In this document: piece after piece, positions 5,836 to 45,382 of the stretch
Numbering within the stretch: position 1 is the first letter of the stretch
Layout: every line of letters starts with the position of its first letter
Source: Octopus sinensis
Taxonomy: Eukaryota
Assembly: GCF_006345805.1 (NCBI RefSeq)
Contig: NC_043005.1
Span: 30,380,001-30,444,000 of the forward strand
Length of the DNA stretch: 64,000 bases
Direction: 5' to 3'
Made by a program: the position numbers and the translations under genes
The notes under the pieces: generated by a model
Told to the model about the DNA's origin: nothing
Database searches by the model: none
What the model saw: only the letters and a program-made list of their open reading frames with translations

Positions 5836-8800
5836 TCATCTTTGTGGAATGTTTTCAAAATCTTGGTAATCGTACATGTCACTAGGAACCAAATCCTGAA
5901 TATTATGGCCTTTATCACTATCAGATGATTGTTTTCTTAAAATGGTGGGTCGAAAGTGAACAGTTAACTTTACACGAGAATGGTATTTTGTGATTGGTTG
6001 GGTATTTAAAAATGAATTTTTCCAACCTTTCTTTTTCCATTTTCTATGCTTTGTCTGTTGCTTAGATTTTGTGTAAGGGTAATTGTCAATATAAACATCA
6101 TTGCTCACAGACTTTTCAAGATTGTTATTAGAATCGATTGCATGGAATGGTTTTGATTTCTGCCTGTCCTCTCTCTCAGGCTTTGAATCCTTTACTTCAT
6201 CAACAAAGGTAGAACTTGAAATCTTCTGGTTATTACCTGGTCTATAATCTTCTGGATTAATACCAGAGGCAGAGTTAGATTCAAGATCATCACCAGAAGC
6301 AGAGTTAGAATCAAAGTCATCATCATCATCATTAGAAGAGCTGGGGTTGAGATTATCCCCAGAGGCAGAACTATAATCTGTATCATCAACAAGTGTTAAA
6401 CTAGATGCTGAACTACTAGGTGAGGATTTTCTAGGGTCAGGTTTCCTGTATAGACTATGAATTAAGGAATAACTCGATCCTGATTTATTCCTATTAGCAG
6501 GAATAGAGTTATTGAATACAGATATTGATGCTGAAGTAGTTGTAGGAGAAATTAATGTGGAATTTTGATTATTTTCAGGAGATTTAATAGAATTGTCTGA
6601 AACTGAATTGGAACCTGGTTTTTCACCTTTCAGTGAAGAGATACCTGCATATCCACCTGATGGAGAAGGAGTATCTGGGTAATGTCCAGAACCATAGTTG
6701 GAATGTAAATTTTCTCCAGATGCAGAACTGGAATCCATATCCTCACCAGAGGCAGAATTAGACTCCATATCCATACCAGAGGCTGAATTTGTGTCCATAT
6801 CATCTCCAGATGCAGATCTCAAGTCAGTATAAGCTTTGGATATTGAAGAAGACGATGCAATATTTTGGGTGATTGAAGCAGAAAAATCATCAATGTTAAG
6901 TGTAGTGTTTGTGTTTAAAGTATCTTCTGGAGTGAAAGTAATATGTGGTGAGACTCCAGAAGTTTGGAGAGAACTACTTAAAGCTGAAGTAAGATGTGGT
7001 GCTGCTAAAATGGTAGAAGAAGAATCTGGAAATGTTTTTAGAGAAAAACTAAAAAGTTTGTAACTACTTTGTATTGGTGTGGAGTATGAACTTGTAACAG
7101 GGGTGTGAGTTGAACCAGGGAATATTTTAGGGGGTATTGTTGATGAGATGTCACTGTTTATGACGGATGGAGGACGTGGAGTTGTAAGAGAAAGAAATTT
7201 ATATATTGTAGAAGATTTTATAGGGTGAGAAGTAGAACTTGAAGATATTTTGGCTTCATGAAGATTTTCATAACTTAATGATTCTTCCTTAGAACCAGAA
7301 CTAGACTTCAAGTCATCCTCAGAATCAGTACTTGCTTCCAGGTCATCCCCTGAATCAGTGCTAGATTCCTGGTCATCCTCAGTGTCAGAACTTGATTCTA
7401 GATCATTCCCAGAGGAAGAACTAGGATCTAAATCTTTTTCAGAAATTGTGGATGTGAGTTCACTGTTTACAACAGATGCAGGATGTGGAGTTGTAACAGA
7501 AAGAAATTTATATTTTGTGGGAGATTTTGTAGAATGAGAAGAGAATGAAGTTATTCTGGATTCCGGATAATTTACAGACATTGAACTGGAGAGAATAACA
7601 TCTCCAGAGACAGAACTGGGGCCATAATTATATTTAGAGATAGAATTGGAATGAAGATAATTCCCTGATGACCTAATATGAGTTTCTGAGAATCTTTTGG
7701 AGGGAATAGCAACTGTTGTGTCAGTGTGTGACTGCAGGTTACCTCGAGAGTTAGAGCTAGACTCCAGATAGTCCCCAGAATTAGTACTTGACTCCAAGTC
7801 ATCCTCTGAGTCAGAGCTTGATTCTAGATCATCCCCAGAGGAAGAGCTAGATTCTGAATCATCTTCTGTGCTAGAGCTAGATTCCTCTTTATCATCAATT
7901 TCCAAATGGGATGGAGAACTAGTTGTTTCAACAGAAACAGATTTACTGTTGATATAAACACTAGGTGTGTTGATATAATTACTGACAACTGAAGAATATT
8001 GAGTAACACTATTAATTGATTGATGTAATATAGAACTAGTAATGTGGTAACTATTTGAAACTGGGGTAGGTTTGGGCATTTTAGGTGGTATTGTTGATGT
8101 GATGTCACTGTTTATAACAGATGTAGGATGTGGAATTGTAAGAGAAAGGAATTTATATGTTGTGGGAGATTTTGTTGATTGAGCAGTTGAGCTTGAAGGC
8201 ATTCTGGTTTCACGAAGATTTCCATAACTGGAACTAGAAACAGACTTAAGCCGTGAAATATAACTAGAATGAAGGTAATTCAGTGATGATCTAACATGAG
8301 ATTCTGCAACTCTCTCTGAGGAAGTTGTAAGTTTAGTAGAAAATTTTGATTTAAAATTTAGTTCAGTGTCAGAATTAGATTTCAGCTCTTCTCTGGAACC
8401 AGAACTAGACTTCAAATCATCCTCAGACTCAGTACTAGCTTCCAGATCATCCCCTGAATCAGTGCTAGATTCCTGGTCATCCTCAGTGTCAGAACTTGAT
8501 TCTAGATCATTCCCAGAGGCAGAACTAGGATCTAAATCTTTTTCAGAAATTGTGGATGTGAGTTCACTGTTTACAACAGATGCAGGATGTGGAGTTGTAA
8601 CAGAAAGAAATTTATATTTTGTGGGAGATTTTGTAGAATGAGAAGACAATGAAGTTATTCTGGATTCCGGATAATTCAGACATTGAACTGGAGAGAATAA
8701 CATCTCCAGAGACAGAACTGGGGCCATAATTATATTAGATAGAATTGGAATGAAGATAATTCCCTGATGACCTAATATGAGTTTCTGAGAATCTTTTGGA

Positions 8801-11800
8801 GGGAATAGCAACTGTTGTGTCAGTGTGTGACTGCAGGTTACCTCGAGAGTTAGAGCTAGACTCCAGATAGTCCCCAGAATTAGTACTTGACTCCAAGTCA
8901 TCCTCTGAGTCAGAGCTTGATTCTAGATCATCCCCAGAGGAAGAGCTAGATTCTAAATCATCTTCTGTGCTAGAGCTAGATTCCTCTTTATCATCAATTT
9001 CCAAATGGGATGGAGAACTAGTTGTTTCAACAGAAACAGATTTACTGTTGATATAAACATAGGGTGTTGATATAATTACTGACAACTGAAGAATATTGAG
9101 TAACACTATTAATTGATTGATGTAATATAGAACTAGTAATGTGGTAACTATTTGAAACTGGGGTAGGTTTGGGCATTTTAGGTGGTATTGTTGATGTGAT
9201 GTCACTGTTTATAACAGATGTAGGATGTGGAATTGTAAGAGAAAGGAATTATATGTTGTGGGAGATTTTGTGATTGAGCAGTTGAGCTTGAAGGCATTCT
9301 GGTTTCACGAAGATTTCATAACTGGAACTAGAAACAGACTTAAGCCGTGAAATAAACTAGAATGAAGGTAATTCAGTGATGATCTAACATGAGATTCTGC
9401 AACTCTCTCTGAGGAAGTTGTAAGTTTAGTAGAAAATTTTGATTTAAAAATTAGTTCAGTGTCAGAATTAGATTTCAGCTCTTCTCTGGAACCAGAACTA
9501 GACTTCAAATCATCCTCAGACTCAGTACTAGCTTCCAGATCATCCCCTGAATCAGTGCTAGATTCCTGGTCATCCTCAGTGTCAGAACTTGATTCTAGAT
9601 CACTCCCAGAAGAAGAACTAGGGTCTAAATCTTTTTCAGAAATTGTGGATGTGATGTCACTGTTTATAACAGATGTAGGATGTGGAGTTGTAACAGAAAG
9701 AAATTTATATTTTGTGGGAGATTTTGTTGATTGAGAAGTTGAGCTTGAAGGCATTCCGGCTTCATGATGATTGTCATAACTTGAGCTTGAACCAGACTTA
9801 AGCCGTGAAATATAACCAGAATGAAGGTGAATCATTGATGATTTAACATGAGATTCTGTGACTTTTTCTGAGGGAGTTACAACTTTTGTGGGAAATTTTG
9901 GTTCAGTGTCAGAACTAAATTCCAGCTCTTCTCTAGAACCAGAACTAGACTTCAAATCATCCTCAGACTCAGTACTAGATTCAAGGTCATCCCCTGAATC
10001 AGTGCTAGATTCCAGATCATCCTCCTCAGTGTCAGAGCTTGATTCTAGATCATTCCCAGAGGAAGAACTAGGGTCTAAATCTTTTTCAGAAATTGTGGAT
10101 GTGATGTCACTGTTTATAACAGATGTAGGATGTGGAGTTGTAAGAGAAAGGATTTTATATGTTGTGGGAGATTTTGTTGATTGAGAAGTTGAGCTTGAAG
10201 GCATTCCGGCTTCATGATGGTTGTCATAACTTGAGCTTGAACCAGACTTAAGCCGTGAAGTATAACCAGAATGAAGGTGAATCATTGATGATTTAACATG
10301 AGATTCTGTGACTTTTTCTGAGGGAGTTACAACTTTTGTGGGAAATTTTGGTTCAGTGTCAGAACTAGATTTCAGCTCTTGTCCAGAACCAGAACTTGAC
10401 TTCAAGTCATGCTCAGAGTCAGTGCTAGATTCCAGGTCATCTTCAGTGTCAGAGGTGGATTCCAAGTCATCCCCAGATGAAGAACCAGACTCTGAATCAT
10501 CTCCAATGCTAGAGCCAGATTCCTTTTCATCATCAGATTCTTGAGATTTAGTATTGGTAACGAGACTAGATGTTGTATTAATATAATTACGGATGACTGA
10601 AGAATTATGTTTAACGTTTTTAATTGATGGATGTAATATAGAACTGGTAATATGATTATTTGAAACTGGGGTAGGTTTGGGCATAAATTCAAAATTTAAA
10701 TCATGTACAGAATTAGAATGTGAATTGAAATTGTCTTTAGAACTAGATGTAGGTACCACATGATGTTTAGAAGATGACCCGTACACCAAATCATCATCAA
10801 AAGAGGAGCCAGACTCCTGGTCATCTCCAGAACTAGTACTAGCCTCCAGGTTATCCCCTGAAGATGTTCTATCCTCAAGGCTAACCTCAGATTTAGAGCT
10901 CGATTTCAAGTCAACCCCAGAGGATGATCTGGACTCTAAATGACCTGCAGTGGTTGTTGATATGCTATCATTGTTTATAACAGATGTAGGATGTGGGGAC
11001 GTAACTGAAAGGAATTTATATATTGTAGGAGATTTTGTAGAGTGAGAAGTAGAACTCGAAATCCTTTTAGTTTCACGGAGATTTCCATAACTTAAACTGG
11101 AATCAGCTTTAAACTGTGAGATATAATTAAGACGAACATAAATCATTGATGATTGTATGAGAGATTCTGAGATGCTTTCAATGGAGGTTGTAACTTTAGA
11201 AGGAAGATTTGATTTGAAATTATTTCTACTGCCAGAACTAGACGCCAAGTTATGTTCAGTTCTAGAACGAGACTTCAGATCATTGCCAGAACTAGATTTC
11301 AATTCGTCCTCAGAGTCAGTGCTCGATTCCAGGTCATCTTCAGTGTCAGAGCTGGATTCTAAGTCATCCCCTGATGAAGAACTAGACTCTGAATCATCTC
11401 CAATGCTAGAGCTAGATTCCTTTTCATCATCAGATTCTTGAGATTTAATATTGGTAACAAGACGAGATGTTGTATTAATATAATTATGGATGACTGAAGA
11501 ATTACGTGTAACTTTATTAATTGATTGATGTAATATAGAATTGGTAATGTGGTAACTATTTGAAACTGGGGTAGGTTTGGGCATTTTAGGTGGTATTTTT
11601 GATGTGATGTCACTGTTTATAACAGATGTAGGATGTGGAGTTGGATGAGGAAGGAATTTATATGTTGTGGGAGATTTTGTTGATTGAGAAGTTGAGCTGG
11701 AAGGCATTCCAGCTTCATGATGATTGTCATAACTTGAGCTTGAACCAGACTTAAGTCGTGAAATATAACCAGAATGAAGAGGAATCATTGATGATTTAAC

Positions 11801-45296: not shown

Positions 45297-45382
45297 ATGT
45301 TTTGACTATTGCCGTAGGGATCACCACTACCTCCTCCGTCTCCGATGAAAATGTATAGGTAGTTGTCATCGCCAAACAGAAG
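45297..45382 (-). CDS. HHIPL: HHIP-like protein, internal exon (most 5' exon found), 86 bp, phase 0->2
   Basis: Acceptor ctgtag, donor AT|gtaagt. Encodes [28 protein letters not shown](M), the 'LLFG.DGYLYIF.GDGG..GDP' motif of HHIPL/GSDH propellers. Joins in frame to exon 28315-28493. Confidence 0.93.

Follow-up and report, generated by a model that had tools for sequence, protein, structure and literature searches.

A giant conserved reading frame behind the HHIPL1 propeller of octopuses: probable intron-to-exon growth in a known protein family

Closest described systems

Proteins of the HHIP-like (HHIPL) family carry a signal peptide, a folate-receptor-like Cys-rich domain (Folate_rec, PF03024), a GSDH-type propeller (PF07995) and, behind the propeller, the motif DPxRRGNPxxC. 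The homologues retrieved are 520-755 aa long and end in a short linker with a hydrophobic end, a basic cluster, or an SRCR, NTR or MAM domain. The stretch of Octopus sinensis DNA analysed here (64,000 nucleotides [nt] of chromosome CM016867.1, GCA_006345805.1; hereafter the window) holds on its minus strand the gene for HHIP-like protein 1 (HHIPL1). It shares all of these head features with HHIPL1 and HHIPL2, and its exon structure, with the DPxRRGNPxxC motif in a short penultimate exon (window 16469-16399), is shared with Haliotis and Solemya. The octopus gene differs in a potential tail of 3,550-4,090 aa, repetitive and acidic, which would be reached by read-through of the donor of the penultimate exon. 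This frame is probably a missed giant coding exon in a known family, and a case of gene growth from intron to exon. A fuller account, which we consider about evenly balanced between right and wrong, is that donor read-through and tandem amplification of a ~150-aa unit turned the last intron of HHIPL1 into protein-coding sequence in the lineage of octopuses. The choice between splicing and polyadenylation would then switch the product between a soluble propeller of 600 aa and a propeller-headed matrix protein of ~0.5 MDa, the long form having been missed by three annotations.

A short, variable Ser/Thr/Pro-rich linker after RRGNPxxC is common among HHIPLs, and the octopus tail is therefore read as carrying this recurrent theme to an extreme, not as an unrelated scaffold. 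The HHIPL C-terminus is a known accretion site, and the octopus tail is an extreme, lineage-restricted expansion by an unusual route; none of the 120 HHIPL homologues retrieved has a tail longer than ~400 aa. No description of this architecture was found in the literature on HHIP-like proteins in octopus and cephalopods.

The propeller is also homologous to that of HHIP (PDB 3HO3, 2WFX), and human HHIP structures match the octopus propeller over residues 175-583 (E = 2.6e-63). HHIP has two EGF domains after the propeller, whereas Pfam finds no domain of any kind in the 1,000 aa that follow the octopus propeller. The Shh-binding loop of HHIP, DDMEEMDG, aligns with octopus DPYGNSQN, a generic HHIPL/GSDH motif with Gln at the position of Asp383, a residue reported to coordinate the zinc of Shh in the HHIP-Shh structures of 2009. 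As EGF domains are absent and the loop is replaced, HHIP-type Hedgehog binding is not predicted for the octopus protein, and the signalling propeller or morphogen sink envisaged in the original prediction is weak.

Mucins and lecticans (aggrecan, versican) have glycosylated repeat regions, each contained in a single giant exon. The predicted octopus protein resembles both in combining a globular binding head with a very long disordered repeat region in one exon of >10 kb. Mucin-like features of the tail are 40.9 % Ser+Thr+Pro, tandem periods of 450-477 nt and, in O. vulgaris, one open reading frame (ORF) of 12.3 kb. As with the glycosaminoglycan exons of versican, which are optional, the giant exon would be included or left out by alternative processing, and acid-flanked Ser-Gly sites (86/109) liken the tail to proteoglycan core proteins at the level of motif only. 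Unlike mucins and lecticans, to which it has no sequence homology, the tail is Ser-rich rather than Thr-rich; it lacks the vWF-D, CK, link and C-type lectin domains (Pfam) of gel-forming mucins and lecticans and has 5 Cys in 4,090 aa. DSPP/phosphophoryn and phosvitin likewise have long repeats rich in Ser, Asp and Glu within one exon, but the octopus tail has neither RGD nor homology to SIBLING/DSPP proteins and consists of ~150-aa units rather than tri-peptide repeats. Its isoelectric point is only 4.76, as each unit also holds a Lys/His-rich half.

Secreted and membrane forms of immunoglobulin mu arise from splicing versus intronic polyadenylation at a composite terminal exon. The arrangement proposed for octopus HHIPL1 is similar, in that a 5' splice site inside a coding exon would compete with a downstream poly(A) site to give two C-termini from one gene. 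A functional 5' splice site does lie within the extended exon (CTG/GTGAGT at 16399) and is used by the RefSeq isoforms X1 and X2. The octopus read-through part differs in its 10.6-12.3 kb of coding sequence, and its poly(A) site is a candidate only.

The HHIPL1 gene in the window

The reverse-complemented window corresponds to positions 28380-92379 of the O. sinensis locus (L002; 100 % over 64,000 bases), and was compared with loci of O. bimaculoides (L001), O. vulgaris (L003), Haliotis cracherodii (L004) and Solemya velum (L005). RefSeq isoform X1 of O. sinensis HHIP-like protein 1 (P0123, 601 aa) contains Folate_rec (E = 4.6e-13) and GSDH (E = 1e-32) domains according to Pfam, and the encoded architecture is a signal peptide, a folate-receptor-like Cys-rich domain, a six-bladed GSDH-type propeller and the short exon RRGNPELC...NISG. 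Residues 1-318, for which O. bimaculoides has a single exon, are encoded outside the window; they include the Cys-rich domain, and the N-terminus preceding it (MEFSKLWVLIITAIFS...) is hydrophobic. Identity of the head is 57-63 % with homologues from other molluscs and 53-57 % with those from vertebrates; judged by its sequence, the head is an ordinary HHIPL protein.

Six minus-strand exons together encode P0123 residues 319-572 with ~100 % identity (tblastn with P0001). Every acceptor is an AG behind a pyrimidine tract, every donor starts with GT and the phases are compatible, and the six GT-AG exons rebuilt in the original prediction were right in coordinates, borders and phases. These exons, placed by splice borders and tblastn of P0001, and the elements that follow them are:

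45297..45382, minus strand: HHIPL1 propeller exon, 29 residues (P0123 ~319-347), AG acceptor and GTAAGT donor; it carries the loop aligning with the Shh-binding loop of HHIP
28315..28493, minus strand: HHIPL1 propeller exon SVLLGKVLRINV...DRVTG
26648..26791, minus strand: HHIPL1 propeller exon
24964..25093, minus strand: HHIPL1 propeller exon ending ...GDFTNG
23279..23421, minus strand: HHIPL1 propeller exon RLFYLYQFNESQIWLNKEIHMCGDDVC...SFGEDQY
19434..19515, minus strand: last HHIPL1 propeller exon GEIYILSTNIASATVPSGSIYKLVDPF, donor GTAAAG
16399..16469, minus strand: ancestral short exon RRGNPELCEPQLSYNKTDVPYNIS(G), as in RefSeq X1/X2; P0123, P0121 and P0001 all end an exon here
16393..16398, minus strand: strong 5' splice site GTGAGT (CTG/GTGAGT), used by X1/X2 and identical in O. 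bimaculoides

The predicted splice from 19434 to 16469, which reads ...YKLVDPF-RRGNPELCEPQ..., is used identically in the models of O. sinensis (RefSeq) and O. vulgaris. Spliced reconstruction of the propeller exons into the tail gives 2,642 codons without a stop.

Within the intron behind the exon at 23279, the stretch 21268-21363 (minus strand) is matched at 87.5 % by an older O. bimaculoides-like model (P0002, 292 aa; ...RNLSGGSSSISFISLLNKVFNRLFLSQVD...), which departs from the propeller after that exon. The stretch is possibly an alternative 3' exon or a retained-intron artefact.

Conservation of the tail reading frame

The frame that opens at the 16469 acceptor continues beyond the 16399 donor into the tail, which consists of four parts:

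15401..16398, minus strand: unique N-terminal tail part EWLHSSGDNYDEHGSAECLDPSGFTCTF..., no Met, dN/dS 0.37, no indel versus O. bimaculoides
9308..15400, minus strand: first part of the repeat array, units of ~150-154 aa, periods of 450-477 nt, higher-order blocks
8677..9355, minus strand: frame-break zone, eight deletions of 1-3 nt versus O. vulgaris, stops at 9305-9307 and 8735-8737
5836..8922, minus strand: remaining repeats (SASG[DE]DM[DE]), unique C-terminal ~430 aa with the basic cluster KHRKWKKKGWK, end ...DMYDYQDFENIPQR and stop

The stop-free stretch extends from 16507 to 9308 on the minus strand, with 2,387 codons counted from the acceptor before the first stop. A second segment of 1,028 codons follows in a different frame (8922 to 5839), with the final stop at 5836-5838. 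No further stop-free stretch of >210 codons is found anywhere in the 64-kb window, and chance is therefore excluded as the origin of the tail ORF. In O. vulgaris the counterpart ORF, equivalent in start and end, is unbroken (L003 76704-89009; 4,102 codons, 4,090 aa after the acceptor), and the O. bimaculoides ORF segments sequenced (718, 556 and 575 codons) are all open. Behind the propeller, a long open frame is present in both of these other Octopus species. Of the single-exon, single-frame tail of ~3,550 aa in the original prediction, the position in frame behind the HHIPL exon and the stop at 5836 hold; the single frame does not, being broken at 9355-8677 in the window, though unbroken in O. 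vulgaris.

We have high confidence, from comparison of the Octopus sequences, that the tail is coding; overall, its dN/dS lies at 0.37-0.45. Over the first ~335 unique codons after the donor, O. sinensis and O. bimaculoides differ by no indel, with synonymous divergence (dS) of 0.10, nonsynonymous divergence (dN) of 0.04-0.05 and dN/dS of 0.37-0.44 (Fisher p = 0.0024), and differences in the unique N-terminal part are distributed 17/5/22 over codon positions. The best-conserved part of the tail is codons 26-75, the 50 codons directly past the donor, with 0 nonsynonymous and 2 synonymous differences. The 359 nt of intron immediately upstream contain five indels versus O. bimaculoides, and neighbouring introns have about one per 100-160 nt. 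At the intron rate of ~1 per 100 nt, ~19 indels would be expected in 1,908 nt of tail; one was seen (Poisson p about 1e-7), of 24 nt, in frame and in the unique C-terminal region. Gap-length statistics from repeat self-BLAST were too noisy and were not used. Versus O. vulgaris, 6,879 nt of the ORF are gap-free, with 62/61/112 substitutions by codon position, and O. sinensis/O. vulgaris introns have ~32 gap openings per 5 kb. On this comparative evidence, three Octopus species have kept the tail ORF as coding sequence that shares its frame with the HHIPL exon.

Proposed joining of the tail to the propeller

Translation of the tail requires skipping of the donor CTG/GTGAGT at 16399. O. sinensis X1 ends in ...NISGILQM and X2 in ...NISVI, both leaving the exon at 16399. 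The X1 acceptor (L002 93004) lies 625 nt past the left end of the window, ~17 kb downstream of 16399, and the search for the ILQM terminal exon within the window was accordingly negative; the X2 acceptor (L002 101466) lies ~9.1 kb past the left end, ~25.5 kb downstream. The entire giant ORF therefore sits in the last intron of both isoforms. The terminal coding pieces of X1 and X2 contribute just 5 and 2 residues, and the short octopus isoforms are without the hydrophobic C-terminus seen in other molluscan HHIPLs. A convergent thioredoxin/PDI-like gene (L002 98168-111473, minus strand) spans the X2 acceptor.

Haliotis cracherodii and Solemya velum have the same exon pattern, in which the RRGNP exon is internal and short (23-28 codons) and the last exon encodes 40-53 aa. 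Because both carry a donor at the equivalent place, the one at 16399 is judged ancestral. When the homologous donor is read through, a stop follows after 1 codon in Haliotis cracherodii and after 18 codons in Solemya velum, so the long open frame is a feature of the octopus lineage and no default. With an ancestral donor, the giant frame represents exonised read-through into the ancestral last intron.

Fusion of the tail to the HHIPL1 propeller through a read-through isoform is, on genomic evidence, somewhat favoured. Reading through from the HHIPL exon leads into the frame of the tail, which is open up to 16507, and the most constrained part of the tail abuts the 16399 donor. In agreement with the original prediction, the tail shows no start of its own: no Met is conserved among the three Octopus species before tail residue ~320, and a scan of the ~3-kb intron 19433-16470 for a signal-peptide-like alternative first exon gave no convincing candidate.

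If the donor at 16399 is used, the mRNA would acquire a very small terminal exon from 17 or 25.5 kb downstream, giving the annotated short proteins of 598-601 aa. If it is left unused, the exon would become a composite terminal exon that extends into the ancestral last intron, probably ending at a poly(A) site just past 5836, for which there are two candidate signals:

5658..5663, minus strand: candidate poly(A) signal ATTAAA, 175 nt past the stop, hexamer match only
5255..5260, minus strand: candidate poly(A) signal AATAAA, 578 nt past the stop, hexamer match only

Read-through would lengthen translation by ~3,520 codons in O. sinensis and by ~4,065 in O. vulgaris, to a predicted secreted protein of ~4,100-4,700 aa and ~0.5 MDa. 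It would have a propeller head and a disordered tail of net charge about -280, whose ~150-aa units alternate between acidic, Ser-rich blocks with Ser-Gly sites and Ser/Thr/Pro/Lys/His blocks, and the long form would serve as a mucin- or proteoglycan-like extracellular scaffold. We infer the read-through transcript, its poly(A) site, the secretion of the long form, its glycosylation or phosphorylation and its matrix function from the genome.

Several observations weigh against a long isoform. The sole models available (O. sinensis X1/X2 and one for O. vulgaris) all splice at the 16399 donor and omit the tail, and this donor fits the consensus as well as any donor of the gene. There is no gene model on the tail in the O. 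sinensis or O. vulgaris annotation, and the long isoform is a prediction from genome sequence. The poly(A) hexamers are pattern matches only, the tail copy in the window is frame-broken, and the unique C-terminal region is weakly constrained in substitutions (dN/dS 0.73, not significant). An exon end near 16399, which had been named beforehand as counting against the fusion, is indeed where annotated X1 and X2 end. Because the annotated isoforms use this donor, the fusion is a predicted alternative isoform and not a known product. The giant secreted propeller-tail chimera of the original prediction keeps its in-frame position, its conservation and its lack of an own start over ~320 codons, but is spliced over in the annotated isoforms.

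Alternative explanations

The tail could be an untranslated intronic tandem repeat, the unit of which chances to have no stop in one frame. It is repetitive, with periods of 450-477 nt, is unannotated in two genomes and gave no protein homologue, exhaustive HMMER with tail residues 1-356 yielding two spurious matches only. However, ~900 non-repetitive codons are open too, the frame is held over 12.3 kb although repeat copies diverge down to 66 % identity, and dN/dS below 1, the third-position excess and the near absence of indels versus the flanking introns are all contrary to such an origin, which is already strongly disfavoured and which we consider very improbable. A different doubt concerns O. 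sinensis alone, where the frameshifts might be real, leaving a tail of ~2,390 aa that is part of HHIPL1 and ends at 9308, with the downstream 1,028 codons as a recent relic. The breaks are present in the window sequence as given, and as O. sinensis and O. vulgaris differ by ~2 %, a freshly disabled 3' part would still appear open. Yet the eight differences (1, 1, 1, 1, 1, 1, 3 and 2 nt) are deletions only, all of them bases missing in the window versus O. vulgaris, and cluster within 700 nt at the point where colinearity ends and the O. sinensis repeat array is ~2 kb shorter than that of O. vulgaris; the best colinear alignments over the other ~10 kb of the ORF contain only two indels (3 and 2 nt), both within the zone. 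Such a pattern would be expected of a poorly polished or collapsed repeat. As the breaks lie where colinearity fails inside the youngest repeats, they are probably assembly errors in GCA_006345805.1, from local mis-assembly or polishing, and real frameshifts are unlikely.

A further possibility is that the tail belongs to a separate same-strand gene nested in the last intron of HHIPL1 and encodes a protein without the propeller. Its transcripts would begin at a promoter of their own or with an alternative first exon that is spliced either to the acceptor at 16469 or to a position slightly within the ORF. Nested genes are common in long introns. O. bimaculoides RefSeq places separate models on the tail ORF (1,082 aa, for which rebuilding gave no single-intron solution, and 465+ aa), and every HHIPL1 model of O. 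sinensis and O. vulgaris omits the tail. These O. bimaculoides models, however, directly follow a frame-broken HHIPL1 model that omits the last propeller exon, probably because, by its inferred placement, that exon falls in an assembly gap (L001 47392-47619). The start codon of the 1,082-aa model is unconserved, its Met being Val in O. sinensis. Constraint is strongest in the ~320 codons without a conserved Met, the open frame reaches back without a break through the HHIPL exon to 16507, and the 3-kb upstream intron has no signal-peptide-like first exon. A nested gene is therefore a doubtful explanation, though one to which we give some weight, and the read-through isoform of HHIPL1 is the reading that we carry forward.

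Should the long isoform exist, octopuses would have a very large protein specific to their lineage and a clear example of an intron giving rise to new coding sequence, and the poorly understood HHIPL propeller would find a concrete setting at the head of a polyanionic scaffold outside the cell. There is in any case an annotation gap, as the gene sets of O. sinensis and O. vulgaris lack a conserved 12-kb ORF that is split in O. bimaculoides. The O. sinensis reference also probably contains an assembly error at 9355-8677. The peptides and junctions defined here are now searchable in existing RNA-seq, Iso-Seq and proteome data.

Composition of the tail

Composition was computed on the O. vulgaris copy, which has 4,090 aa, a mass of 439 kDa, an isoelectric point of 4.76 and a net charge of -283. 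Ser (26.7 %) predominates, followed by Thr (9.1 %), Asp (8.0 %), Glu (7.0 %) and Pro (5.2 %), and there are five Cys. The tail has no RGD motif and no hydrophobic segment (maximum 19-residue Kyte-Doolittle mean 0.7), in keeping with the originally noted lack of a transmembrane segment. The basic unit of ~150-154 aa is arranged in higher-order blocks with longer variants and comprises an acidic Ser-rich half (e.g., DLDPSSSSGNDLESSSDTEEDxESSTDSGDDLESSTESEDDLKSSSGSREELKSSSDTEP) and a second half rich in Ser, Thr, Lys and His (KFPTKVTTSSEKVTESHVKSSMIHLHSGYISRLKSGSSSSYDNHHEAGMPSSSTSQSTKSPTTYKFLSLTTPHPTSVINSDITST). Unique stretches of the tail include EWLHSSGDNYDEHGSAECLDPSGFTCTFIGLEDNEVETSK and GHNIQDLVPSDMYDYQDFENIPQR.

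The tail contains 109 Ser-Gly dipeptides, of which 86 are next to acidic residues (e.g., DSGDD, SSGND and ASGED) at the motif level only, as well as phospho-type motifs (111 S-x-D and 48 S-x-E). These putative sites are consistent with attached glycosaminoglycan chains or phosphorylated Ser, and the stretches rich in Ser/Thr/Pro with putative mucin-type O-glycosylation. Pfam finds no domain in the tail, and exhaustive HMMER with tail residues 1-356 against 1.84 billion representatives found no homologue; the two matches were bacterial repeat proteins aligning at GDxLE(S/T)G(S/A)T and were rejected as spurious. A word-index protein search of the tail and junction was treated as uninformative, as it missed P0001 and P0123 despite 51 identical shared residues.

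The C-terminus (window 5839-5900, minus strand) ends in ...VPSDMYDYQDFENIPQR, an acidic Tyr-rich motif of a kind that is often tyrosine sulfated and that resembles, by resemblance only, the hirudin tail DFEEIPEEY. Just upstream, the basic cluster KHRKWKKKGWK looks like a heparin-binding motif, again as a resemblance only. Homology of the octopus C-terminus (basic cluster plus FLN) with the last exon of other HHIPLs was considered and rejected (best E 0.05 among ~100 tails).

Other features of the window

A 33-bp minisatellite at 62682-63119 (13.3 copies, 98 % identity) produces spurious ORFs on both strands (YRIDNTTDSDK repeats); the Pfam matches to it are artefacts, and none of the remaining window ORFs has a real Pfam match. 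Long microsatellites (TATC/ATAC-type, GA/GT runs and GAT/GAC-rich) occur at 26005-26484, 28049-28558, 29209-29598 and 37742-37972 and yield low-complexity pseudo-ORFs adjoining real exons, e.g., right after the exon ending at 28315. A dispersed short element with the translation ...LSSEFKFHRGRLCLSSFRG... recurs in introns (~611-997, 20767-20861 and 22458-22570) and is presumably an octopus repeat resembling short interspersed nuclear elements (SINE-like).

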